DNA from: Prasinococcaceae sp. CCMP 1430
Taxonomy: Eukaryota > Plantae > Prasinodermophyta
Length of the DNA: 64,000 nucleotides
Assembly (NCBI GenBank): GCA_013416795.1
Contig: RQSC01000858.1
Location: forward strand, 1-64,000
Direction of reading: 5' to 3'
Notes under the pieces: generated by a model
Databases searched by the model: none
The model's input: only the letters and a program-made list of their open reading frames with translations
Told to the model about the DNA's origin: nothing
Position numbers and translations under genes: made by a program
Shown here: positions 6,269 to 60,700 of the stretch, one piece after another
Position numbering within the stretch: position 1 is the first letter of the stretch
How the letters are laid out: the number at the start of each line of letters is the position of its first letter

Positions 6269-6628
6269 NNNNNNNNNNNNNNNNNNNNNNNNNNNNNNNN
6301 NNNNNNNNNNNNNNNNNNNNNNNNNNNNNNNNNNNNNNNNNNNNNNNNNNNNNNNNNNNNNNNNNNNNNNNNNNNNNNNNNNNNNNNNNNNNNNNNNNNN
6401 NNNNNNNNNNNNNNNNNNNNNNNNNNNNNNNNNNNNNNNNNNNNNNNNNNNNNNNNNNNNNNNNNNNNNNNNNNNNNNNNNNNNNNNNNNNNNNNNNNNN
6501 NNNNNNNNNNNNNNNNNNNNNNNNNNNNNNNNNNNNNNNNNNNNNNNNNNNNNNNNNNNNNNNNNNNNNNNNNNNNNNNNNNNNNNNNNNNNNNNNNNNN
6601 NNNNNNNNNNNNNNNNNNNNNNNNNNNN
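6269..6628. other. Assembly gap (360 N)
   Basis: Run of N in the sequence. Confidence 1.
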
Positions 6629-13080: not shown

Positions 13081-13125
13081 NNNNNNNNNNNNNNNNNNNN
13101 NNNNNNNNNNNNNNNNNNNNNNNNN
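13081..13125. other. Assembly gap (45 N)
   Basis: Run of N in the sequence. Confidence 1.
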
Positions 13126-25005: not shown

Positions 25006-27033
25006 TTACCTGCCGCGCAGCCTGCGCAGCAGGGAGAACAGCCCGCCCGACCCGCCACCGTCGCCACTTGCCCTGGCGCGCCTTAGCAGCAGCGACATGA
25101 TCCCGCCGATGAGCATGCTCTGGAGTGTGCCGGTCATCAGAATGACGTTGTAGGGCATGGAGAAGTCAGGTAGCGGCTGGTCGAGGAGCAGCGCGTCGCT
25201 GTAGAGGGGCGCGAAGCCGTCACCCAACAGGCGGTCGTCGCGGCCGTGCCCTTCCAACGCGCTCAGGCGTGCGAGCAATGGTCGCTGCTGCAGGTCATGG
25301 CGCTCAGTGGGCGACGCGACTCCCATCACCCTCCAACTTCGGCCAGCCACAGCGGCCGCGCTCCTGGGGGCTGGCGTGAGCGCCAACATCGCCGCGGGTA
25401 TGTCCCGCCCTCGGCTCGCGTCAGGCAGATACTCGTCGACGTGCCTGAGCGTTGACTCGATGTCGGCGCGGAGCTCAATCCACGCTGAGCCACGCGGGAG
25501 CGCGCCGCATAGCTCCAGCGTTGCGGGCCTACCCGCCGTGGCGGGCACGAGGGAGTGCAAGGGGAACAGGGCCTGCCATTGCACCTCGCGCCCATCCAAG
25601 CGCGTGCGCATCGTGTGCAGCCATACTCGCGCCCATGCCGGCACCATTTGCAGCACGCAGAAGTGGATTGCCTCACCGCTGCCACCCCCTGTGCCCTCAG
25701 ACATGTAATTGACCCGGTCTAGGCGGATTTCGAGGACCGCAGTCCCGGCCGGTGCCGCTGCAGGCTGGCGCGCCGTACGGCTGATTCGTAACGGCGGCCC
25801 CCGTGAGGGTGGCCACATGCGTGCGGGCACCTCACCCGCAGCAGCCAGCGCCGCCAGGGACTCACCTGGAGCGAACTCGATCGACATGGGCGCGGAGCCA
25901 CCGAAACCAGCTGTGCGAGCTTCTGGCACCGCGAAGTCGAGCAGCACGCGCCGCAGCTCGCCCTCAATGCTATCAGCGCCTGCATTTGCGTCGGTTGTGC
26001 CACCCTCGTCGAGGACCGCCGATGGCTGCGGCGAGACCGAGTACGCCACGTTTCGAACGGCGTCAGCGCCCGCACCTCCGACGCGGACGCCGGCCGCGCG
26101 CAGGAGCTCGCCTTCGAGCTCGACGTACACGCGGCTGTGCCTCGCGACCTCGCAGCGACCGGTCGCGGGGCCGCCGGGAAGAATCTCTGACAGTCTCCAG
26201 CCAGCGCCTGCGCCGCGCGCGCTTGGTGGAAGCACGAGCTGCAGTGTCTGCACCAGCCGCGCGACGCCACCAATCGCGCTGATTGAGATTCCAAGCGAAT
26301 GATAGCTCGCGCGGTATACTGCTCGTCGACCGGCCTCGCCAGCGAGTAGCGCCGCGACGCCAGCGTGGTCACGGCACGGGAGAAGCTTGATCCAGGGCGT
26401 GAGATTCTCCACACAGACCGCCTCGCGCGGCAGCACACCGTAGCGCAGCTCGCCTGTGTCGCCGATGCCCGGCCGTCCCCTCGGAGGCGCGGCGGCGTCC
26501 CTGCTGCGCTCGTTGCGGCATGCCACGAGTGCGGGGGCTGTAACCTCGCCTGTCACCAGCCGCGGGATGGAAGTGCAAAGCATCGCACCTAGCGTGACCA
26601 TCAGCTCGTCCCACAGAGCATCTGCCTCGCCTGAACCCAGGTGCGGCGCGAACTCTGCCCACGCCTCTAGCCCAGCTGGGCGCGCACCTAAGCTCGCGTT
26701 GCCCCAGCGCGTGTAATCCCACCGACCGTGAGTGAAGCTTAGCTCGAGCTTTCGCACATGGTGTCGCCGCAGCACGGCGAGCGCCGCCGCAGGGAAGTGA
26801 CGCGGGAAGCGTTGCGCCGCCCCATTCTCTTCGCCGCCGCCGCCCCCCGGAAGCTCCTGCGCAAAGTGGAACAATGCGGCGACGGAGCCGTCCGGCAGCG
26901 GCCGCAGGAGCAGCTCCTCGTCGAACGTCTCGGCCGCGGCGGCAGTGGATGCTCCTGCGGCAGCAGCGGCGGCGGGTGGTGCGAGCGCCGGCGCGTGCGC
27001 CAGCGCCAGCGCCAGGGCCAACGCCAGCGCCAA
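25006..27033 (-). CDS. PIGT: GPI transamidase subunit PIG-T/Gpi16; start codon not resolved
   Basis: ETFDEELLLRPLPDG, LELSFTHGRWD, LPREAVCVENLTPWIKLLPC, LPDFSMPYNVI plus a C-terminal TM helix. An in-frame stop at 27067-27069 with no ATG indicates a damaged or missing 5' end near the N at 27102. Confidence 0.88.
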   Translation of the reverse strand: MALALALALALAHAPALAPPAAAAAAGASTAAAAETFDEELLLRPLPDGSVAALFHFAQELPGGGGGEENGAAQRFPRHFPAAALAVLRRHHVRKLELSFTHGRWDYTRWGNASLGARPAGLEAWAEFAPHLGSGEADALWDELMVTLGAMLCTSIPRLVTGEVTAPALVACRNERSRDAAAPPRGRPGIGDTGELRYGVLPREAVCVENLTPWIKLLPCRDHAGVAALLAGEAGRRAVYRASYHSLGISISAIGGVARLVQTLQLVLPPSARGAGAGWRLSEILPGGPATGRCEVARHSRVYVELEGELLRAAGVRVGGAGADAVRNVAYSVSPQPSAVLDEGGTTDANAGADSIEGELRRVLLDFAVPEARTAGFGGSAPMSIEFAPGESLAALAAAGEVPARMWPPSRGPPLRISRTARQPAAAPAGTAVLEIRLDRVNYMSEGTGGGSGEAIHFCVLQMVPAWARVWLHTMRTRLDGREVQWQALFPLHSLVPATAGRPATLELCGALPRGSAWIELRADIESTLRHVDEYLPDASRGRDIPAAMLALTPAPRSAAAVAGRSWRVMGVASPTERHDLQQRPLLARLSALEGHGRDDRLLGDGFAPLYSDALLLDQPLPDFSMPYNVILMTGTLQSMLIGGIMSLLLRRARASGDGGGSGGLFSLLRRLRGR

Positions 27034-27128
27034 CGCCGATGCGGATGAGCAGGAAAAGGCGAAGCCTCAGGATGGCGGCGAGATCGTCGTCACGGCCCGC
27101 CNAGGCATCCGTTGGCGTATCCACAGTC

Positions 27129-47731: not shown

Positions 47732-49330
47732 TTACCGCCGCTGCGAGCCGTCGCCGCCGGCGCCGCCGGCGCCCTTTTCCGCCGCCTGGCGGCGCTTCTC
47801 CGCCGCCTGCCGCGAGAGCTCCGCCAGGCGCGCCGCGGCGGTATCGCCGGCGATGGGAGTGCCGCCTCGGCCCTCCATGGCGCGGCGTTGCACCTCAGCG
47901 ATGCGGCGTCGGCGCTCCACACGCTCCGTGTCGGCGCCCTCGGCGCCCTCGGCGTCCTCCGCGGCGGCGGCGGCGTGCTGCTCCGAGGCGGCTTCGCGCT
48001 GGCGCGCCTCGTCCGCGGCGCGCTCGTCCTGGCGCATGCGACGCTCACCGGCGTAGTCCTGTAGCTTGTACAACATGCGCTCGAAGTTCTCATCCGCTGT
48101 TCCGATGCGGTGCCACGCCGCGCGCGCGAGCGGGCGGCCCCCCCGCCGGCTGCGGCGGCCACGCCGCTGCGGGAGCAGCGCATCCAGCTCCGGCCCATCT
48201 GGCACAGCCACCTCGTCCTGCAGCGCGTCCTCGCCCGCACCCCCAGCGGCGTTCGGTGTCTCGGCGTCAGCCGACGCGCCCTCGCCCGCCGCGGCAGTCG
48301 CCGTCGCCTTCGTCGCAGCGACGATCCGCTCGCGGCGGTGTGCCTTGATCACTCTGCCCAGCTTCGGATCGGACTCGTCGTACTCGGACAGCTTCACTGA
48401 CAGGCCCTCGAAGCGGTCCTCGGCAGCGGCGTCATAGAGCTCGTGTGCCTCAATGGCAGTGACGCCCTCGCCCGTCGGCTTGATCCGGTCTGCGGCCGTG
48501 ATGCCGCGCCACAGCTGCCTCGCCATCGCCTTGCGGTTCTGACGCGCGAACGCGCTGACCCTCTCTGAGTGCGCGTTGAAGTATCGCACCAGCCCTGGGT
48601 CGGCGTCCTTCCAAATGTCCGCGTGCGCCACGTCGTCGATGCCGTCGAGCGCGGTCTCGCGGCGCTCGCGATCCGCCACGGTGCCCGCGGACTCCTCGGG
48701 TGTGATTCTTCGCGACGCCCTGATGCCACGCGGCAACCCCGTGTAGTCGCGCGGCGGAGTATACAACTCCTTCCTCCCAGAGACCGGGCTCGGTAGACGG
48801 CCATCCTCGACGGCCGCCTGCATCGCAAAGGTGAACAGCTCGCCGCGGCGCTTGCTCAGCGCGGGCACGCGCTCGCCCTCCACCAGGCGCTCCATGCGCC
48901 GCGACATACGTCGCACCGTCAGCGTGGGGGGCGCGCCCGGCTCGGGCTCCACCACACCGCGCGGGAAGCGGCGCGCAGCGCGGGCGAGCACGCCGAGCGC
49001 GGCCTTGCTGTCCGAGTCAATGCTGAGCGCGGCCCGCACGATCGCGCGGCGCTGCTCGACGTCAGCAGGGTCGAACGTGCGGCCCGTCGCCGCGATCGGG
49101 AAGCTCACGCCATCGCCCTTGGCTTGCTCGAGCGCCGCCTCGAACGTCTCCTCGCCGCGCGCACTGGTGCGCTCGGCCGCTGGCGCCCACCACGCTCCGC
49201 GCGGGGCGCTGCGCGCGGCCCCGTCGCGCGCNCCCACCCGCGCCCTAACGGATGGCGCTCGGCGCGCGCGTGCCCACACTTTGGGTTTTACGTCACTTTG
49301 CATGAGGACGAGCCGCTCGCTTCGGTGCAT
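47732..49330 (-). CDS. Hypothetical protein (~500 aa) with coiled-coil C-terminus; 5' end uncertain (N at 49232)
   Basis: Long ORF with a normal globular composition, unlike the Arg/Pro-rich shadow frames. No family recognised. Confidence 0.55.
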   Translation of the reverse strand: MHRSERLVLMQSDVKPKVWARARRAPSVRARVXARDGAARSAPRGAWWAPAAERTSARGEETFEAALEQAKGDGVSFPIAATGRTFDPADVEQRRAIVRAALSIDSDSKAALGVLARAARRFPRGVVEPEPGAPPTLTVRRMSRRMERLVEGERVPALSKRRGELFTFAMQAAVEDGRLPSPVSGRKELYTPPRDYTGLPRGIRASRRITPEESAGTVADRERRETALDGIDDVAHADIWKDADPGLVRYFNAHSERVSAFARQNRKAMARQLWRGITAADRIKPTGEGVTAIEAHELYDAAAEDRFEGLSVKLSEYDESDPKLGRVIKAHRRERIVAATKATATAAAGEGASADAETPNAAGGAGEDALQDEVAVPDGPELDALLPQRRGRRSRRGGRPLARAAWHRIGTADENFERMLYKLQDYAGERRMRQDERAADEARQREAASEQHAAAAAEDAEGAEGADTERVERRRRIAEVQRRAMEGRGGTPIAGDTAAARLAELSRQAAEKRRQAAEKGAGGAGGDGSQRR

Positions 49331-49634
49331 CAAATGCACGCACGTGCACGTCGGATCACACCCATTTCAGGTCAATACAAAATCAGGGTTTAATTTCATC
49401 ACCTATGCATTTTGATGTATTTTATTGATTTTGATGGCCGGCGCGGCGGGCGCGTTCCGGAAGCGCGGCGGCGGCCGCCGCGGGCGCGAGGGGGAGCGAG
49501 CGGGGCGGTGCCACACGGCGCGCCTGCGGCGGGGTTGCATGTTACGCACGAGCGCACCTGCGCGGGCAGCAGCGGGGGGCGCCCGATCCTCCGCGCGCCG
49601 ATCGGCCGCCGCGCGCCGCGCGCGCGCCGCCGCG

Positions 49635-50641
49635 ATGGCGCCGTTCGACAAGGAGAGCGCCGCGGGCGCGCGCTTCCAGTACGACGACGCCGAGAGCGAG
49701 GTGACGCTCTCCGTGCCGATCGGTGCGGGCGTCAAGTCCAAGGACATCGCGTACAAGCTGCGGCCGTCGCACCTCACACTGGGCATCAAGGGCGGCGAGA
49801 CGCTCATCGACGAGGATCTCGGCGGCACCGTGCAGGTCGATGAGTGCTTCTGGGAGATCGATACCGTTGACGGCGAGCGCTGCGTGAACGTCGTGATGGC
49901 CAAGGCGCAGCGCTACGCCGACTGGGAGTTCTGCCTCAAGAGCGAGGACAAGCCCGCTGACATGACCATCACCGACAAGGTCTTCTTTGACATTTCCATC
50001 GGTGACAAGGACGTCGGCCGCATCGTCTTCGGCCTCTTCGGCAAGCAGGTGCCCAAGACCGTCGAGAACTTTCGCGCGCTGTGCACGGGCGAGAAGGGCG
50101 AGGGCAAGGCCGGCAAGCCGCTGCACTACAAGGGCTGCGCGTTCCACCGCATCATCCCGGGCTTCATGTGCCAGGGTGGCGACTTCACGAACGGCAACGG
50201 CACCGGCGGCGAGTCCATCTACGGCGAGAAGTTTGACGACGAGAACTTCGGCATCAAACACACTGAGAAGGGCCTCCTGTCGATGGCCAACGCTGGTCCG
50301 GGTACGAATGGCTCGCAGTTCTTCATCACCACGGCCATCACCGGCCATCTCGATGGCAAGCATGTCGTGTACGGCAAGGTTCTGGAGGGGTATAAGGAGG
50401 TCGTGCTGAAGGTCAGATGCGCGCACGCGCATTGGGGTCGCGAGGCCTCGGACACGAGTGTGCGCGCGGGGCGCTCAGCGCCCGACCGCCGTGCTATCCT
50501 TACAAGCATTGCTGACTCAGCTCGCGCGCGTCGCTTTGCTCCCCGCACCCCCTGCAGATGGAGGCCGTGGGCTCCGGCGGAGGCGAGACGTCCGAGCCGG
50601 TCGTCATCAAGGACTGCGGCGTTCTGCCCGTCGACGCGTGA
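49635..50641 (+). CDS. CS (p23/NudC-like) domain fused to a cyclophilin PPIase, 2 exons (49635-50411, 50558-50641)
   Basis: N-terminal [28 protein letters not shown] resembles a CS domain. The cyclophilin has [16 protein letters not shown] and [25 protein letters not shown]. Splicing restores VVLK|MEAVGS..VVIKDCG. Confidence 0.88.
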
Positions 50642-51109
50642 GCGCGCACGCTCACCTGCGCCCGTGCCCGCGCCGGCGCCTGCACATACCGTAATCGCCG
50701 CCGTCCTGGTCGTCCCTCCCCCCCTCTACCGCCGCCCTCAAACGCCCCTGTCGTCTGCCTGCCGCGTGTATCTCCCTGCGCGCCTGGCTGCTCGCCTCGC
50801 CTCGCCTCGCGCCGCTCCTCGAGGCCCTGTGGGCGTCACCACTCCTGCGTGCGCACATCAGGGTTAACCCCAATAAACACCTAACCCTATCGCAGAAACG
50901 CTCTCGAGTTGACCTGCGACGAGTGTGTGTGTGTGAGCGGCGGCGCCCCACACGCCGCGCGCAGGCGCTGCCCCCACCCCCCCATCCACGGGCGGTGCCG
51001 GGTGCTCGCGGTGGAGGGAGGGGGCGAGGATCGACCGCGCTGGTGCGGGGCTGTGGCGGGCGGGCAGCGCGCCGGGTGCGGTTTGCGCGCGCGCGCGGGA
51101 GGGGGGTTG

Positions 51110-53182
51110 ATGTCGGTGCTGCTCGAGACGACGCGCGGCGACGTGGTCGTGGACGTCGCGGCGGCGCGAGCGCCGCTGTGCGCGGCGAGCTTCTGCGCGC
51201 TGGCCGAGCTCGGGCGGTACGACGGCGCGCTCTTCCACGGCGTGCAGCGCGGATTTGTGGCGCGCTGCGGCGAACGCGACGCGGCCTCGGGCGAGGCGGC
51301 GCTCTTCGGCGGCGCCCGGCGCCACTGCTCCGCCTACGGCGTGCTGCGCGGCGACCCCGACCGCTGCCGCTGCGTCGAGGACGAGGCCGGGCTCAGTCAT
51401 GCGGCCAAGTACTCGGTGGCGTTCGACAAGGCCGAGGCGGGTGGCAACGCTGCCAACTTCTACATAACGCTGCGCGAGGGCCTCGACTACCTCGATGAGG
51501 GCGCGACGGTGTTTGGCGTCGTTGCCGAGGGCGGCGATATCGTGGACTCGCTGGGCGAGCTGCCTATCGACGCTGAAGGGCGGCCGCGCGTGAATGTGCG
51601 CGTGTTGCGCGCGCACGTGCTGGAGCGCGCACCGCTGGCGGAACAGCCCGATCGCGACGCGCTCGAGCGGCTGCTGCGCGAGCGCGGCAGCGAGCGCGAG
51701 CGTGCGCGTGCCGCCGCGACCGCGGCCGATGCGCGGGGGCGCGCCGACTTTGACGGGCGGCTAGAGGACGGGTTCGTGCCGAAGGCAGGCGGCGAGGGGC
51801 TTGATGCGGAGGCGCTGCGCAAGAAGGAGGCGCGCTCGCATGTTGAAGTGCTCGAGATGCTAGGCGATCTGCCCACTGCGGACGCTCGTCCGCCTGAGAA
51901 CGCGCTCTTCGTGTGCAAGCTCAATCCAGTGACGCGTGACGAGGACCTGGAGATCATATTCGGTCGCTTCGGTCCGGTGTCGAGCTGCGAGGTCGTGCGC
52001 GATGCGGCGACAGGCGACTCGCTGTGCTACGCCTTCGTGTGGTATCAGGAGCGGTCGGCCGCCGAGGTGCGCGCAAGCGCAGCCGAGCGCGTACTGCGCG
52101 CGCGCAAGGCGCAGAATGCAACCGCTCTCGCGCGCTGACACTCGAAGCGCCAATGCCTCCTCACGCGTCGACACCCGCAACCCCTCGTGCACCACGCGCG
52201 TCGCCAGGCGGCCTACCTGAAGATGGACAACGCGTTGGTCGACGATCGCCGCATTCGTGTGGACTTTTCGCAGAGCGTCAAGCGGCTCTTCGGTAAGTAT
52301 CGCTCTGGCGGCGCTCGTGCCGACCGTGCGAGCGGGCTCGAGGCGGAGGAATTCGGAGGCGCCGGCGGTGGTCGCAGTGGTGGCGGCCGTGGACGTGGCA
52401 GAGGAGGGCGCTTTGGATCTGGTGGCAGAGGTGGAAGGGGGGCGTCTGGCGGGCGCTTTGGCTCGCACGGGCAGCGTGAGGGCGCCCCGCAGCTGCAACT
52501 GCGTGCGAGCGCGGCGCGCGGGCTCAGTGGGCCGCTACTGCTCCCGGCTCGCCCGCGGCCCGCGGATGCGGAGCAGCGGCAATCGCAGGCGCAGGTGCCA
52601 CCGCAACCGGGGGAACAGCAGCAGCGGCAGCAGCAGCAGCAGGAGCAGGAACAGCACCAACGGCAAAGCAGGCGCGAAGAGGATCGCCCTGATCATGGAC
52701 GTGGTGACAGAGAAAGGGATGACGAAACTCATAGGCGCCATCATCATCACGAGAAGCGCCACAAGCACCACAAGGAGCGACATCACTCCAGCCACCGCAG
52801 GCGCCACGACAGTGACGATGAGGATGCTCGGGGTAGGGACGACGGGGAGCGGCGCGATACGCACCGAGAGCATGGTGAGCGCAGGCATCACTCCAGCAGG
52901 TCAGATCGCGAGCGGGGGCGTGAGAGCGAGCGCAGCAGGAGCAGGCACCACTCGCACAAGGCGGAGCGCAAACACTCCCATCGCGATCATCACGATCGTG
53001 ACCGCGACCGCGATCGTGACCGCGACCGCGATCGTGACCGCGACCGCGATCGTGACCGCGACCGCGATCGTGACCGCGACCGCGATCGTGACCGCGACCG
53101 CGACAGGCGCCGCGACCGCGACCGCGATCGTGATAAGAAGCACAGGCGAGAGCGCGAGAGAGATCACAGGGATCGGGAGTAA
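51110..53182 (+). CDS. PPIL4: Cyclophilin-RRM protein PPIL4/CYP59-like with RD-rich tail, 2 exons (51110-52066, 52208-53182)
   Basis: MSVLLETTRGDVVVD, PPENALFVCKLNPVTRDEDLEIIFGRFG, GDSLCYAF, AE|AAYLKMDNALVDDRRIRVDFSQSV. The tail includes six copies of an 18-bp DRDRDR unit (52994-53101). Confidence 0.9.
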
Positions 53183-53361
53183 TCACATGCGTTTGTGTAC
53201 TCGAATGGCGTTGGGTAAGGGTGCCATCGCGCGCCATGGCAGAGAGCTCCCCCTGATTTCGCGCGCCACCAATTTTCTTCAATGCATCATCTGTAAGTCG
53301 TGCCCCTCCGGGAACGCTAGCTCGCGATTGCTGCGTGCAAGACGTTTGAATGCCCACGGAG

Positions 53362-53799
53362 TCATGAGCTTGCCAGGACGTTGTCTGCGAGCCATCCGCG
53401 TAAGGCGTCTGGTGCGGCTACCGCGCGCTGGCGAACGTCACGCTCGAGCACGAGCAGCTCCGCAGCGAGCATGAGCGCCTCCTCGCGCGGCGGTAGGCCC
53501 GAGCCGCACATGCTGTGAAACGCCGCCTCGGCACCCTCGGCCCTTTCTTGTCCATCAACACCTCGGTTTGCGCCCTCGAGCGACCGCCGGTCGCTGCCGG
53601 CCACTGGCACGCGCACAGCGCTCCCGATGGTGGGCTCATCATTCTCTGAGCTCGCGGCACCCGAACCGCCCCGCGGCTCGCCTCCCGCGCCCGTCTGGGC
53701 GCGCATCTCTGTCGCTGCCTGCAGCAGCTCCTCGCGCCGCGCGGCGAGGCTCGCCGCACCGCCGCCGCCACCGTTGCCTTGCATCTCCGCCTCGCTCAT
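53362..53799 (-). CDS. Hypothetical 145-aa protein
   Basis: ATG-initiated frame with a helical C-terminal segment (EEALMLAAELLVLERDVRQRAV). No family recognised. Confidence 0.4.
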   Translation of the reverse strand: MSEAEMQGNGGGGGAASLAARREELLQAATEMRAQTGAGGEPRGGSGAASSENDEPTIGSAVRVPVAGSDRRSLEGANRGVDGQERAEGAEAAFHSMCGSGLPPREEALMLAAELLVLERDVRQRAVAAPDALRGWLADNVLASS

Positions 53800-54149
53800 G
53801 CGCACGGCCTCTCTCCCTCCTCCCTGCGCCTCCGCTCCTCCGTGGCGCCACGAGCGTCCGCGAGAGCGCTCGCTCCCAACGCGCCCTGCGCCGACAAACC
53901 CCTCCCACCCCCTTCCCGAACCCGACGCCGCGCGCGCTCGCGAGCTCTTTGGGCAGGATCTCGTGCGCCTGAGCCTCTGCGGGGAGCGGTGGCGAAGGGC
54001 ACCGCCGCGCCAACACCCCCCTCCCCACAACCACGGCGCGCGCGCCCTGTGGCGCGCACACGCGCCGCTGCCACTCCGCCCGCGCCAATGCAGAATTTTT
54101 GTTTTTGAATCGCTGCGCGTGTTTGGTACGCCCCCGCACCCTTCTATAA

Positions 54150-54522
54150 TTCAATCGAAGGAATAATTTAACCACGGGAATGTACATCATGCCAGTGGCT
54201 ATATCAAAGCGCATGCCGTATGGGCTGGCGTTTTTTTGGGGAATCGCGGCGCGCGTTCCTGCGCACATCTCGAATCCAATCGAAGGAATGATGTAACCAC
54301 GGGACTCTATTACAACTGAGTGTCAGTGTCTATATCAAATCGCATGGGCTGATCTGAATCTGCTCGCGTTTTTTTTTTTTGAATCCGATCGCGCCACATC
54401 GCACGCACATCGCACGTAGGAAGTAGTAGGAACTTCCTCCGCTTCCCACCCGCGCACTGCGCCTATTCAATCGAAGGAATAATGTAACCACGGGAATGTA
54501 ATGGCGGCTCTATCAAAGCGCA
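54150..54522. repeat. Three dispersed copies of a bipartite AT-rich element
   Basis: Block A CAATCGAAGGAATRATKTAACCACGGGA at ~54152, ~54277 and ~54468. Block B CTAT(AT)CAAA(G/T)CGCA at ~54199, ~54330 and ~54510. Confidence 0.9.
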
Positions 54523-54579
54523 GGGGCGCACGGCTGCGAGGGCGCCAGAGCGCGCGCGCGCGGAGCTTCCTCCCGCTCC

Positions 54580-54629
<50 letters not shown>

Positions 54630-54707
54630 AGGCGCTTGCGGCAGCCCTACGCGCGCGGCGGGCGACGAGGGGGCTTCGGGTAGGGCGGCGCGGCCGCGAG
54701 GGCGCAG

Positions 54708-57700
54708 ATGGCGGAGCCCGTGGAGGTGGCGACGGTGGCCCCGAGCGAGGAGGTTGAGACCGATGCGTTCTTCTTTCGCCTGCGTGCCAAGCTGCGGCTG
54801 CCGGCCGGCTCGGGCGGCGCGGCGCGTAGCGCGCGGCTGCTCGCCGGAGCGCAGCGCGCGGGCGTCGCGGCGGCGGCGTGCGACAGCGGCGTGGCGCTCG
54901 TGAGGACTGACGCGCTGATCGCCGGTGGGCGGGATGGGTCCAACCTGAGAACGCTCCCTGGGGTCGCCTTCGTGGAAATGCGTGCCCTCCTGGCGGTGTC
55001 GCTCTCTGCCGATGGCTCGCTGCTCGCTTGTGCGACGCCGCGCTCGCTGTACATATACGGGAGCGCCGCTCTGCTCGCGGACGGCGCCGCGGCCACGGCC
55101 CCTCGTGAGATCTTCACGCTTGGGATGGATGAGGGTGAGATCGTGCAGGCAGAGTTCTCGACCCACGCGCCGCATCGACTGCTGCTGGTCACGTCGACAG
55201 GCATGGCATATGTGCTCCAGATCGATGCGAACGGTGCCTCCGGAGCAAAGCTCGCGCTCGAGGGTTCGGGCGATGCTGTCGCTGCAGCTTGGGCGCCTGC
55301 GGGCGACGTTGTGGCGATTGCCCGGAGCGATGACATCATATGCGTCGGCGCCGACGATGCCAAGGTCCGGTGGAGCGTGCGACTAGGAGAGGGGGCCATG
55401 GAGGAGAGCATGGCTGGATTGGAGGGGGCGCTCTTCGTTGAAGCTCTGCGGTGGCCAACGGACGCCACGCTGCTTTGCACGGTGGGCTCCGCGGACGAGG
55501 GCGATGAGACGTCGGCTCTGGTTGCACTCGATGTGCGCAGTGGAAGCGCCGAGGTGGCGGCGTGCGACGTTGAAATGGGACTGGGTATTTTTGAGGATGA
55601 CCTAACGAGCGGGTCGCGCCAAAGAGCGCTGACGCATTGCGCTGCCGTCGAGCAGTGGGGCGTGGCCGTCGTGGCGGACAGGCGTGCCTCCGATGATCAC
55701 CTCAACCTTGTGTCATGCGCATGGGATCGCAGCGCCGAGCAGCCCTCGCCGTGCTTGCTGCGGATCGCTGAGGACATCGCGCTCGCCCGCGTCGAAATGG
55801 TCGATGGCAACGACGACTTCGTCGTGGGCTTGTGCATGGACCTCACGCGTGCCTCGGACGCTGTCGACGATCCGCGTGATGACGAGGCGCCCGCCGTGCC
55901 CTGTGCGCCTCTTCTGCTGGCGCTCACATCAGCGGGTGTACTGTGGTGCTACGCTCTCGCCGCTGCGGACAGCGATGTGCCCGTGCCTGCTCGGGATGTC
56001 ATCTCCGCGCCCGCCGCGATTCCCGAATTGGAGGCTTCCCAAGCGGAGGCTGCAGCGCCTGAGCAGCCGCCTGCCGAGGGGGGCTCCTCGAATGACACGG
56101 CCGAGGCAGAAGGGGAGAGCAGTCAGGGACTGGGTGCACTTGGCGCTGCGCTCGGCGCTGCGCTGCCTGATAGCGACGACGACGAGGAAAGTGGTGCGAG
56201 TGCAGAGGAGAGTGTCGGCGAAGTAGGCGCGGGATCGGTCGCACCTGCTGCGGTGCAGTCAGCGCTACCGGATGGCGAAACTGAAGACTCTACGCAGGCG
56301 GGTGGAGGGCGGGCTGGTACGTCCGATGATGACACGGATGAGAGCGAGGTCGAGTCACCGTTCAGGCAAGAGGGGGCAACAGAGGAGGAGCCATTCTCGT
56401 TCCGCCCATCGACGGCAGCCCAGCCTGGGGCAACTTTTTCGTTCAGTCAGCCTGCAACGCCTGCTCCGGGGAGTGCGACAAAGCCCATGACAGTGAACCC
56501 GCTTTTCAGCGCTACCGCATCGGGCGCGGGGATCTTCGGTGCTCCAACCACGCCGCCTGAGTCTGCTACCGCCACCCCGCTTTTCGGCGCCACGAAGCCT
56601 CCGCTGTTCGGCACCCCATCCTCCGGAAAGCCTGCATTCGGTGCTCTACCCGGTGGGAAAGAAAGCGACTCGGAGCCTCCCAAAGAAGCAAAGCCTCCAG
56701 TGGCAGCCTTCCCGCCCGCTGCTGCGGCCATGCCCGCCTTCGGTGCGGCGGCCGAAACCAAGGAATCGAAGCCTGCGGCGGCCGGTGCGTTCCCGGCCGC
56801 AGCTGCCGCTGTGCCTGTCTTCGGCGCCTCGGCTGTGCCTGCGGCAGCGGGCGCTTTCCCTCCTGCGGCTGCAGCCGTTCCCGCATTTGGGGCTGCACCT
56901 GCCAAGGACACAAAGTCTTCGGCGGCCGCAGCTTTTCCGCCTGCGGCTGCAGCCGTTCCCGCATTTGGGGCTACACCTACGAAGGAAGACAAGAAGACGT
57001 CGGCGGCGGCCGCGTTCCCGCCTGCGTCTGTTCCCGTGCCCGCTTTCGGCGCGCCAGCCAAGAAAGAGGACAAGAAGGCTCCGGCGGCGGGTGCTTTCCC
57101 ACCCGCAACTGCTGCTGTCCCCGCCTTTGGGGCTGCGCCTACCAAGGACAAGAAGCCTGCGGCGGCCGCGGCATTTCCGCCTGCGGCTGCCGCCGTGCCC
57201 GCGTTTGGCGCCCCGGCCAAGAAGGAAGAGAAGAAGCCTGCGGCGGCCGCGGCATTCCCGCCTGCGGCTGCCGCCGTGCCCGCGTTTGGCGCTCCGGCCA
57301 AGAAGGAAGAGAAGAAGCCTGCGGCGGCCGCGGCATTCCCGCCTGCGGCTGCCGCCGTGCCCGCGTTTGGCGCTCCGGCCAAGAAGGAAGAGAAGAAGCC
57401 TGCGGCGGCCGCGGCATTCCCGCCTGCGGCTGCCGCCGTGCCCGCGTTTGGCGCTCCGGCCAAGAAGGAAGAGAAGAAGCCTGCGGCGGCCGCGGCATTC
57501 CCAGGCCGGTTCTTCCTTCTCTTCTTCGGACGCCGCCGGCGCCGTAAGGGCGGACGCCGACGTCGGCACGGGCGCAAACCGCGAGGCCGGTTCTTCCTTC
57601 TCTTCTTCGGACGCCGCCCCGCGGCATTCCCTCCCGCAACTGCTGCAGTACCCCCTTTTGGAACCCCGGCAAAATCTCCCACGGATTCTGAGGCTGCATC

Positions 57701-60700
57701 TGTCGAACCTTCTCCAGCAGCTGGCGACAAGAAGACGGCGACTCCTCCGCGGCCAGTCCCGACACCTTACACGCCACCAGCGCCGAAGTTTGGGCAAGTT
57801 GACAATGCGCAGTCGGTAGAGGCGGCATTCTCGACAGAAATTGATTCGGTGAAGTCTGCAGGCGAAGGTCTGGCTGAGGTTATCAAGGCGATTCAGATAG
57901 GTGCACCCACGGCACCCTTTCAGGGCGTGGTCGCATCGCACACACTCCCGGAGCGCACGGCTGCGCTGGCTGATCGCGTGGCGGCACTGCGCGAGCGGGC
58001 TGATGGCGTGCGTCCTCGCATGTGCGTGCTCAAGGACCGGCTCATCGACGTGAAGGTCGGCATTGCTGAAGCAGAAGCTTCGTCGGCAGTCACGCTTGCC
58101 AGCGACGGTGTTGTTGCTGAGCTCGCCGACGAGCGCCCCCTCCCGCCCCCCGCGGCGGCGAGGCGCGATCAGTTACGCCGGCATTATGAGATCATCGTGG
58201 GCAGACTTGCTGAGGTGATGGATGACTTGGAGGCGCGTGAGCGCGCTGTTGAAAGTGCCGCGGCGGCTGGCGCTCCCAGAAAGTCGCCGGCGGCGTCGCG
58301 TGAGCCGCCGCCCAGCCAGCTCTACGGCACGATTGAAACGCAGCGTGCTATCTCGCGGGCCCATGCGCGACGTTTCGATGCCATCGAAAAGCGCATGGTC
58401 GTGCTCGGCATGCTGAGCAGCAGCCACGCAGCAGCCAACGGGACATCGCCGGTGCGAGGCTCACCCATGCCGTTGATATCTGCTTCGCCCAGTGTTCTGC
58501 GTTCGGTAGGCAACCTATCGAGCGCCGGCGGAGGTGCCAGCTCGATCAGGCAGCGCCTGGCTGGCCGCCTCGCACAGGATCGCTCACCACGAGTGACCTC
58601 TGCGAAGAAGTCCACGCCGGACAGCCAGTTGAGGGCGAAGGGCAGCGTGCCGCTTGCTCTTGCGTTCGACGCCACTGATGCTAGCACAGCGTCGCCTGCG
58701 GCGTCCTCGATGAGCATCTCACAAGCTGTGCGGGAGGAATCATCGGCGTCGATGAGCGTGTCGTCAGCACCATCGCAAAAGACCGTTATGGGCACGTCGT
58801 CGGTCTCGGGCCTCGGCGCCTTCGGGAAGAAGCCCGCTGCAAGTAAACGCTCAGCACAGCCTGCTGATAGTGCTGCTTCGAGCGCCAAGTCTGTTAGCGG
58901 CAAGCCCAATGGAAAGACTTCGTCTGAAAAGCCTGCGTCAACATCTACAATCCCACCGGCGACAGCTGCCGTTCCCGCCTTCGGCGTCCCGGCCAAGAAG
59001 GACGGCAAGTCTGCGGCGGCCGCCGCGTTCCCGCCCGCTGCTGCTGCCGTGCCCGCTTTTGGGGCTGCACCAGCCAAGGAAACGAAGCCCGCGGCGTCGG
59101 CCACATACCCTCCCTCAACAGCCTCCGTTCCAGCATTTGGGGCGGCCCCTAAGAAGGCTGACAAGAGACCTGCTGCGGCGGCCGCGGCATTCCCGCCTGC
59201 GGCTGCCGCCGTGCCCGCGTTTGGCGCCCCGGCCAAGAAGGAAGAGAAGAAGCCTGCGGCGGCCGCGGCATTCCCGCCTGCGGCTGCCGCCGTGCCCGCG
59301 TTTGGCGCCCCGGCCAAGAAGGAAGAGAAGAAGCCTGCGGCGGCCGCGGCATTCCCGCCTGCGGCTGCCGCCGTGCCCGCGTTTGGCGCCCCGGCCAAGA
59401 AGGAAGAGAAGAAGCCTGCGGCGGCCGCGGCATTCCCGCCTGCGGCTGCCGCCGTGCCCGCGTTTGGCGCTCCGGCCAAGAAGGAAGAGAAGAAGCCTGC
59501 GGCGGCCGCGGCATTCCCGCCTGCGGCTGCAGCCGTGCCCGCGTTTGGCGCCCCGGCCAAGAAGGAAGAGAAGAAGCCTGCGGCATTCCCGCCTGCGGCT
59601 GCCGCCGTGCCCGCCTTCGGCGCCCCTGCGAAGGAGAAGTCAACGCCGGCGGGTGCGTTTCCGCCTACGACTGGTGCTGTGCCGGTCTTTGGCTCGTCGG
59701 CCAAGGAGGACAAGCCAGCAGCAGTGAGCGCGCTCCCGCCCACAACTGCTGCTGTACCTGCCTTCAGTGCCCCGGCTGCGAAGGAGGACAAGAGCCAAGC
59801 GGCGGTGGGTGCTTTCTCGCCCGCGGCTGCTGCTGCGCCTGCGTTTGGATCTGTGGCAAAATCTGCCGAGGCACCGCTGGCTGGGTTTGGCTCCACGGTA
59901 GCGCTTGGATCAGGGTCCACTGCTGCGCCAGCGCTTGCATTCGGCTCGTCGGGCGCAAAACCCGCGTCCGATGCGCCGACGACTCCGCCTGCTTTCGGGA
60001 CCTCGACACCTGCGCCTGCGTTTGGAAAGCCTCCTTCGACGCCAGCGCCCAGCACTGCAGGGGCATCAGGCCCTGTTTTTGGGGGGGCAGCGTCCACTCC
60101 TGCCAGCGCAGCGGCATCGACGCCTGCGTTCGGTGCAGCAAGCTCAACCACGCCTGCCTTCAATCTCAGCCTTGGAAGCGGTTCCGCAACAACGCCCGCA
60201 GGAGCTACGCCTTCGCCGCAAAACGTGTTTGGGAAGGGAATGACAACCTCCCTGGGTGCCGCATCTCCGTCGGCAGGCGGATTTGGCCAGGCGCCGAGCT
60301 TTGGCAGTTCAATGGGTGGGCCGGTGCAGTCCACCCCGTCGCCCTTTGGCGCCGCGGCTGCGGCAAAAACCAGCCAGCCATCATTTGGAACACCTTCGAC
60401 GATGGGTGGAGCAGCAGGCAGCACCGGTGCCGCGGCCTTCGGTGCGCCTGCCGCTATGGGCTCATCAGCGGCAGCGACCGGAGCAGCGACCATGACGGGG
60501 GTCCCCGCATTCGGTCAAAGCAGTGCATTTGGCGGCGGCGCTGCATCTCCCAGCCCTAGCGCTGCTGGTAGCTTCGGAACCTTCGGCAAGCCCGCTGGTG
60601 GTGGCTTCGCTGCATCCGCAGTTCAGTCACCTGCGGCTGGCTTCGGCACCCCGAGCGGGTTCGGCCAACCCACCAGTGGCGCATCGCCGGGCGCTGCTAG

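Follow-up and report, generated by a model that had tools for sequence, protein, structure and literature searches.

Tandem repeats are described in PMC6868369 as giving rise to assembly errors and as posing challenges at multiple levels for genome and protein databases. The locus described here resembles such cases: the error lies among identical 81-nt coding units, the copy number is wrong and the protein reading is affected. Unlike collapsed or mis-joined tandem arrays, however, the 116-nt block that is the subject of this work would add to the collapse an error of strand handling, i.e. complementation without reversal. The literature searched contained no account of assembly errors of the complement-only kind.

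In inverted duplication and in template switching, neighbouring sequence is copied with its base identities swapped, and this is also what is seen in the block. These processes give the reverse complement, however, whereas the block matches only as the unreversed complement and is unsupported by the sequencing runs. The AAGAAGGAAGAGAAGAAG part of the repeat unit is purine-rich and roughly mirror-like, and in this respect the unit is similar to mirror repeats and to the homopurine tracts of H-DNA. Mirror repeats are reversals on the same strand, whereas no reverse-only match of at least 15-18 nt was found for the block. Mirror symmetry was rejected as the cause of the block; it cannot yield 116 exact complement positions.

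The protein predicted for the host gene is most similar in its layout to the Nup214/Nup159 FG nucleoporins. Like these, it would start with a beta-propeller related to members of PF16755 and continue with long repeat regions of the FG type. Its own Pfam score, however, falls below the curated cut-off, and its repeat is a lineage-specific 27-residue PAFG unit present in two arrays.

The host gene and its repeat arrays

The window, i.e. the whole 64-kb stretch of DNA that was analysed, has a GC content of 57-74% per 2-kb interval, mostly 65-72%. Its sequence is present in marine metatranscriptomes and in TARA metagenome scaffolds, and the contigs assembled from the DNA runs used below amount to 26-39 Mb. 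Taken together, this points to a picoeukaryote of marine origin with GC-rich DNA. As a draft scaffold with gaps and ambiguous calls, the window contains two runs of N, at 6269-6628 (360 nt) and at 13081-13125 (45 nt), as well as single Ns at 27102 and 49232. The N runs indicate that gap handling took place in this assembly. The features of the locus are given in Table 1.

Table 1. Features of the locus, with positions in the window
Feature	Position	Strand	Description and basis
Host ORF, 2103 aa	54708..61019	+	Predicted Nup214/Nup159-type FG nucleoporin; translation, profile and relative searches
Repeat array 1	56837..57502	+	81-nt units, ~8.3 copies, the last four identical; Tandem Repeats Finder and units in register
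Left junction, phase break	57502..57503	+	At least 33 nt of unit missing, most likely 33-114 nt; register analysis and copy-number model versus k-mer depth ratios
Complement-only block	57503..57618	+	Exact complement match to repeat units; contig depth 0 over 57504-57605
Unique flank between arrays	57619..58967	+	Last degenerate unit and middle domain; 0-difference contigs carrying AAGAAGCCTGCGGCGG before 57619
Repeat array 2	58968..59633	+	81-nt units, ~8.4 copies, in the same gene; complemented block identical to unit 59471-59551 over its first 81 nt

The host ORF would encode an N-terminal beta-propeller, two PAFG repeat arrays placed around a middle domain, and a C-terminal tail rich in GFG and FG. 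When compared with the profile PF16755 (NUP159/214 beta-propeller), the N-terminal 450 residues scored 16.3 bits (E 0.0063), which is below the cut-off of 29.6 bits. A phmmer search against 1.84 billion representative proteins yielded 40 relatives, with E values down to 5e-13, and the PF16755 cut-off was passed by eight of the ten relatives scanned. In the Atlas language-model feature search the same N-terminal 450 residues obtained a score of 0.96 to a Nup214-like cluster. The translation contains ~25 PAFG or PVFG units, distributed over the two arrays, as well as the FG/GFG-rich C-terminal tail, which together constitute a long FG-repeat region. The translation and these searches indicate that the gene encodes a putative FG nucleoporin of the Nup214/Nup159 type, in which membership of the beta-propeller family is assigned via transitive homology. 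On these grounds the NUP214-like label that the earlier note had attached to the gene holds.

The last near-identical unit of array 2, located at 59552-59632, shows a 9-nt in-frame deletion (PAAFPP versus PAAAAAFPP), which may be real or may be a collapse in the assembly. Upstream of the gene, a run of 49 C is present at 54581-54629, ~80 nt before the nucleoporin ATG, where TARA scaffold L001 has ~27 C. Since the C run is also present in L001, at another length, this homopolymer is real and variable in length. The intergenic region 54113-54631 does not align with L001:4905-5256, and an element AATCGAAGGAATAATGTA...CTATCAAAGCGCA is present in three copies in the window and in one copy in L001. 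At 53047-53067, six of the eight TARA scaffolds are ~54 nt longer than the window, and the BLAST pieces share 75 nt in the query versus 21 nt in the window; this points to a difference in tandem copy number.

Sequence of the block and its two junctions

At the left junction the letters of the window read ...GCGGCATTCCC up to 57502 and continue with AGGCCGGTTCTTCC... inside the block; at the right junction they read ...GGACGCCGCC up to 57618 and continue with CCGCGGCATTCCCTCCC... in the flank. As written, the block contains GGCCGGTTCTTCCTTCTCTTCTTCGGACGC. Complemented base by base and not reversed, positions 57503-57618 give a sequence that starts with TCCGGCCAAGAAGG and ends with GCCTGCGGCGG, and that reads in full TCCGGCCAAGAAGGAAGAGAAGAAGCCTGCGGCGGCCGCGGCATTCCCGCCTGCGGCTGCAGCCGTGCCCGCGTTTGGCGC followed by TCCGGCCAAGAAGGAAGAGAAGAAGCCTGCGGCGG. 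The complemented block corresponds to 1.43 units of the 81-nt repeat; it is exact at 116 of the 116 positions and shares the register of the right flank. Its identity with the unit of array 2 listed in Table 1 is exact and includes the CTGCAGCC variant at ~59527, and stretches of 55-60 nt of the complemented block are identical to every identical unit of both arrays. Apart from an internal 35-nt repeat within the block as written, neither the block as written nor its reverse or its reverse complement matched any stretch of at least 15 nt elsewhere in the window. Both ends of the block, as placed in the earlier note, are exact: a base never equals its own complement, and the match would fail if 57502 or 57619 were complemented as well. 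In agreement with the earlier note, then, the block is complementary to the repeat without being reversed, and comprises ~1.4 units including the variant of array 2.

In a k=18 scan of the whole 64-kb window, complement-only pairs joined only the block and the arrays, no reverse-only pairs of at least 18 nt were detected, and no second complement-only case was found. According to our own arithmetic ~0.06 18-mer pairs are expected by chance per 64 kb; a chance origin of the complement match of the block is excluded. Also, complement and reverse comparisons with the TARA Oceans scaffolds over 49218-57130 revealed no second patch. When actual and complemented sequences were compared in a codon log-likelihood screen, the block scored -16.9, and the only other region flagged was 26916-26990. 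The latter region, which gave the lowest score of the screen (-17.3), is separated by 112 nt from the N at 27102. It overlaps the end of a minus-strand ORF (25009-27066), and the plus frame there is probably non-coding.

Once the block is complemented its right junction is seamless, reading ...GCCTGCGGCGG followed by CCGCGGCATTCCC (in the register print, ...GCCTGCGGCGG followed by CCGCGGCATTCCCT...). At the left junction, array 1 is cut at 57502, 48 nt into a unit (...GGCATTCCC), and the complemented block begins at the first base of a unit. Hence, 33 nt of unit, GCCTGCGGCTGCCGCCGTGCCCGCGTTTGGCGC, are skipped here, and the missing length is 33 or 33 + 81n. It had been claimed from the letters that the right junction joins the normal repeat once complemented, and that the left junction is broken, with sequence probably missing. 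The unbroken run into 57619 seen in the register print supports the former, and the 33-nt phase skip and the ratios of repeat to flank depth (see below) agree in supporting the latter.

The position of the CTGCAGCC unit is informative as to where the complemented sequence comes from. In array 2 this unit is followed by a C-type unit with a 9-nt deletion, whereas in the complemented block the next unit is of the T type and leads into the unique flank of array 1. The possibility that the complemented block is a copy of array 2 was rejected, since the order of units after CTGCAGCC differs. Two T-type units in succession, the first with CTGCAGCC and the second leading into the unique flank, are a combination that occurs nowhere else in the window. 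This indicates that the block goes back to real data from its own position, where they represent the final 116 nt of array 1.

In the ORF the block encodes 38 false residues, aa 933-970, which are rich in Arg, Phe, Leu and Gly (GRFFLLFFGRRRRRKGGRRRRHGRKPRGRFFLLFFGRR); the true reading in their place is PAKKEEKKPAAAAAFPPAAAAVPAFGAPAKKEEKKPAA. The block starts at codon position 3 and finishes at codon position 1, and the missing 33 + 81n nt are divisible by 3. Moreover, the 38 codons that the true sequence has in frame include no ATT, ATC or ACT, the three that become stops on complementation. Because of this phase, of the missing multiple of 3 and of the lack of ATT, ATC and ACT codons, the frame stays open by accident. 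The earlier note had quoted the Arg/Phe peptide and had proposed that the error keeps the frame while inserting a false stretch; the peptide is indeed present in the translation of the ORF, which reads through.

Independent sequencing runs at the block

The evidence from independent sequencing runs is based on Logan contigs and not on raw reads; such contigs show presence better than absence, and a hole by itself proves nothing. Fourteen DNA runs, with two organism labels (2020, 2024), contained 0.92-0.94 of the sampled 31-mers of region 56400-58900. As 146 of the 2471 31-mers (5.9%) overlap the block, the block alone accounts for the shortfall.

Contigs of three DNA runs (X1, X5 and X6; two organism labels, three studies) and of one RNA run (X15, a marine metatranscriptome) were placed on 57300-58300. 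Depth over 57504-57605 was 0 in each of them. Flank depth was 2476.5 for X1, 97.6 for X5 and 46.2 for X6; for X15 the flank, too, had a depth of 0 until 58047, and this run, which is without a contig at the junction, is therefore neutral on the block. In each of the three DNA runs, one contig matches 57619-58300, with 0 mismatches over this 682-nt flank. The 16 loose letters that precede 57619 in these contigs are AAGAAGCCTGCGGCGG in all three runs, which is the complement of the last 16 letters of the block and corresponds to ordinary repeat. Leftward of 57619 the contigs thus read AAGAAGCCTGCGGCGG and not the TTCTTCGGACGCCGCC of the block. That they end in these letters is because the sequence turns repetitive at k=31. 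The loose-end letters, which have the full depth of the flank, speak positively for the normal repeat and against the block.

X1, X5 and X6 contain records of 910 and 1400 nt that bridge the distance between the two arrays, from where array 1 ends to where array 2 begins. In X5 and X6, the contigs of 1400 nt continue for 650 more letters, into the start of array 2, and confirm the unique stretch between the arrays. Unlike genuine DNA, the block has k-mers that are absent from the runs containing its flanks, and no contig of the three DNA runs spans its junctions. The zero sequencing support that had been expected of an artefact is what the Logan contigs of the three DNA runs show over 57504-57605.

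The JGI metagenome contigs contained neither the 30-mer of the block nor the true right junction, and the locus itself is absent from that collection. None of the metagenome contigs spans the array: the TARA Oceans scaffolds L001-L008, which belong to the same species and have 96-99% identity, reach no further than 57130, a position within array 1. The neighbouring gene to the right has no record among the metagenome contigs.

The copy number of the repeat was analyzed by dividing the k-mer depth of repeat contigs by the flank depth, and by comparing this ratio with the number of exact copies of the segment in the assembly, either as is or with the block complemented (Table 2). The model is rough, being based on mean depths of unitigs and ignoring GC bias. 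The ratios of repeat to flank depth are 6.9-10.1, more than the 4-8 copies that the assembly contains. The best fit was obtained when the block was complemented and 33 to 114 nt (33 + 81) were added. This suggests that complementing the block leaves the left junction short by a further 33-114 nt. The depth ratios indicate more units than were assembled, in line with the claim that the repeat number in the assembly is wrong.

Table 2. Ratio of repeat to flank k-mer depth and exact copies of array segments (rough model)
Run	Segment	Depth ratio	Copies in assembly	Copies with block complemented
X5	57354-57403	6.97	4	5
X6	57354-57404	6.94	4	5
X6	57312-57352	10.13	7	8
X6	57375-57421	10.15	8	10
X6	57404-57445	7.59	7	7

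Origin of the block and its consequences

We estimate at about 0.94 the probability that the block is an assembly or finishing error and not DNA of the organism, and that the true sequence is the ordinary 81-nt repeat. The depth of 0 in three DNA runs and the normal repeat letters at 57619 argue for the assembly or gap-filling artefact that the earlier note had proposed. As expected of an artefact, the block is an exact unreversed complement of the sequence expected at its place and abuts a discontinuity of the assembly.

According to this explanation, the last 116 nt of array 1 before 57619 would have been written into the consensus complemented, with their order unchanged. The most economical mechanism would be a contig-end extension or a gap-closing step. 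The anatomy of the locus suggests that the right-hand contig, starting at 57619, may have been lengthened on its left side, into a gap of the repeat array. The added stretch would have been assembled as sequence of the opposite strand, and to turn it back it would have been reversed but not complemented; a reverse complement that is reversed is a plain complement. The extended end would then have been butt-joined, with no overlap, to the left contig ending at 57502. A leftward extension and a butt join would give the seamless right junction, the 33-nt phase jump at the left junction, and the missing units. A complement is also expected from colour-space decoding or from a bitwise NOT of a 2-bit code. 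Other base swaps (A with C and G with T, or A with G and C with T) gave 0 matches at k=16, forward or reversed, in what is a weak test covering this window only.

It is quite unlikely that the sequence was instead corrupted downstream of the assembler, through a one-off manual finishing edit (for instance a hand-pasted complemented patch), or through a file-handling error or deliberate alteration in the copy analysed, with no systematic bug of gap filling or extension involved. The exact 2103-aa product of the ORF was not found in a collection of 15 billion proteins, and searches with regions of the protein gave no self hit, their only results being the relatives P0001 (47% identity) and P0002 (68%), which would be in accordance with such a corruption. 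However, the block is located at the phase break of a tandem array and is seamless on one side only. In addition, its combination of variants, a T-type CTGCAGCC unit plus a T-type unit into the flank, is real and represents place-specific data, as contig extension would yield.

The chances are slighter still, close to nil, that the block is real in the assembled isolate, as a complement-only (parallel-polarity) copy that arose by non-templated or parallel-strand synthesis and that the resequenced cultures lack or have lost: although the ORF stays open, and the run evidence comes from Logan contigs, the codon content accounts for the open frame, three DNA runs are identical over the 682-nt flank without having the block and show normal repeat at the junction, the Arg/Phe stretch is absent from both relatives, P0001 and P0002, its lack in P0001 arguing against a real block, and complement-only copying falls outside replication, repair, recombination and template switching, none of which, to our knowledge, includes a process that gives such a copy.

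Ordinary alignment detects complement-only patches on neither strand. A complement-only k-mer scan combined with a search for islands of zero coverage would reveal them and would be a useful quality check, for this assembly as well as for others. The block itself is an artefact, without biological significance or novelty, and is useful as a curation flag for the assembly. For the putative nucleoporin the consequence is a practical one: the gene product derived from the assembly has 38 false residues, and its array 1 has the wrong number of units.
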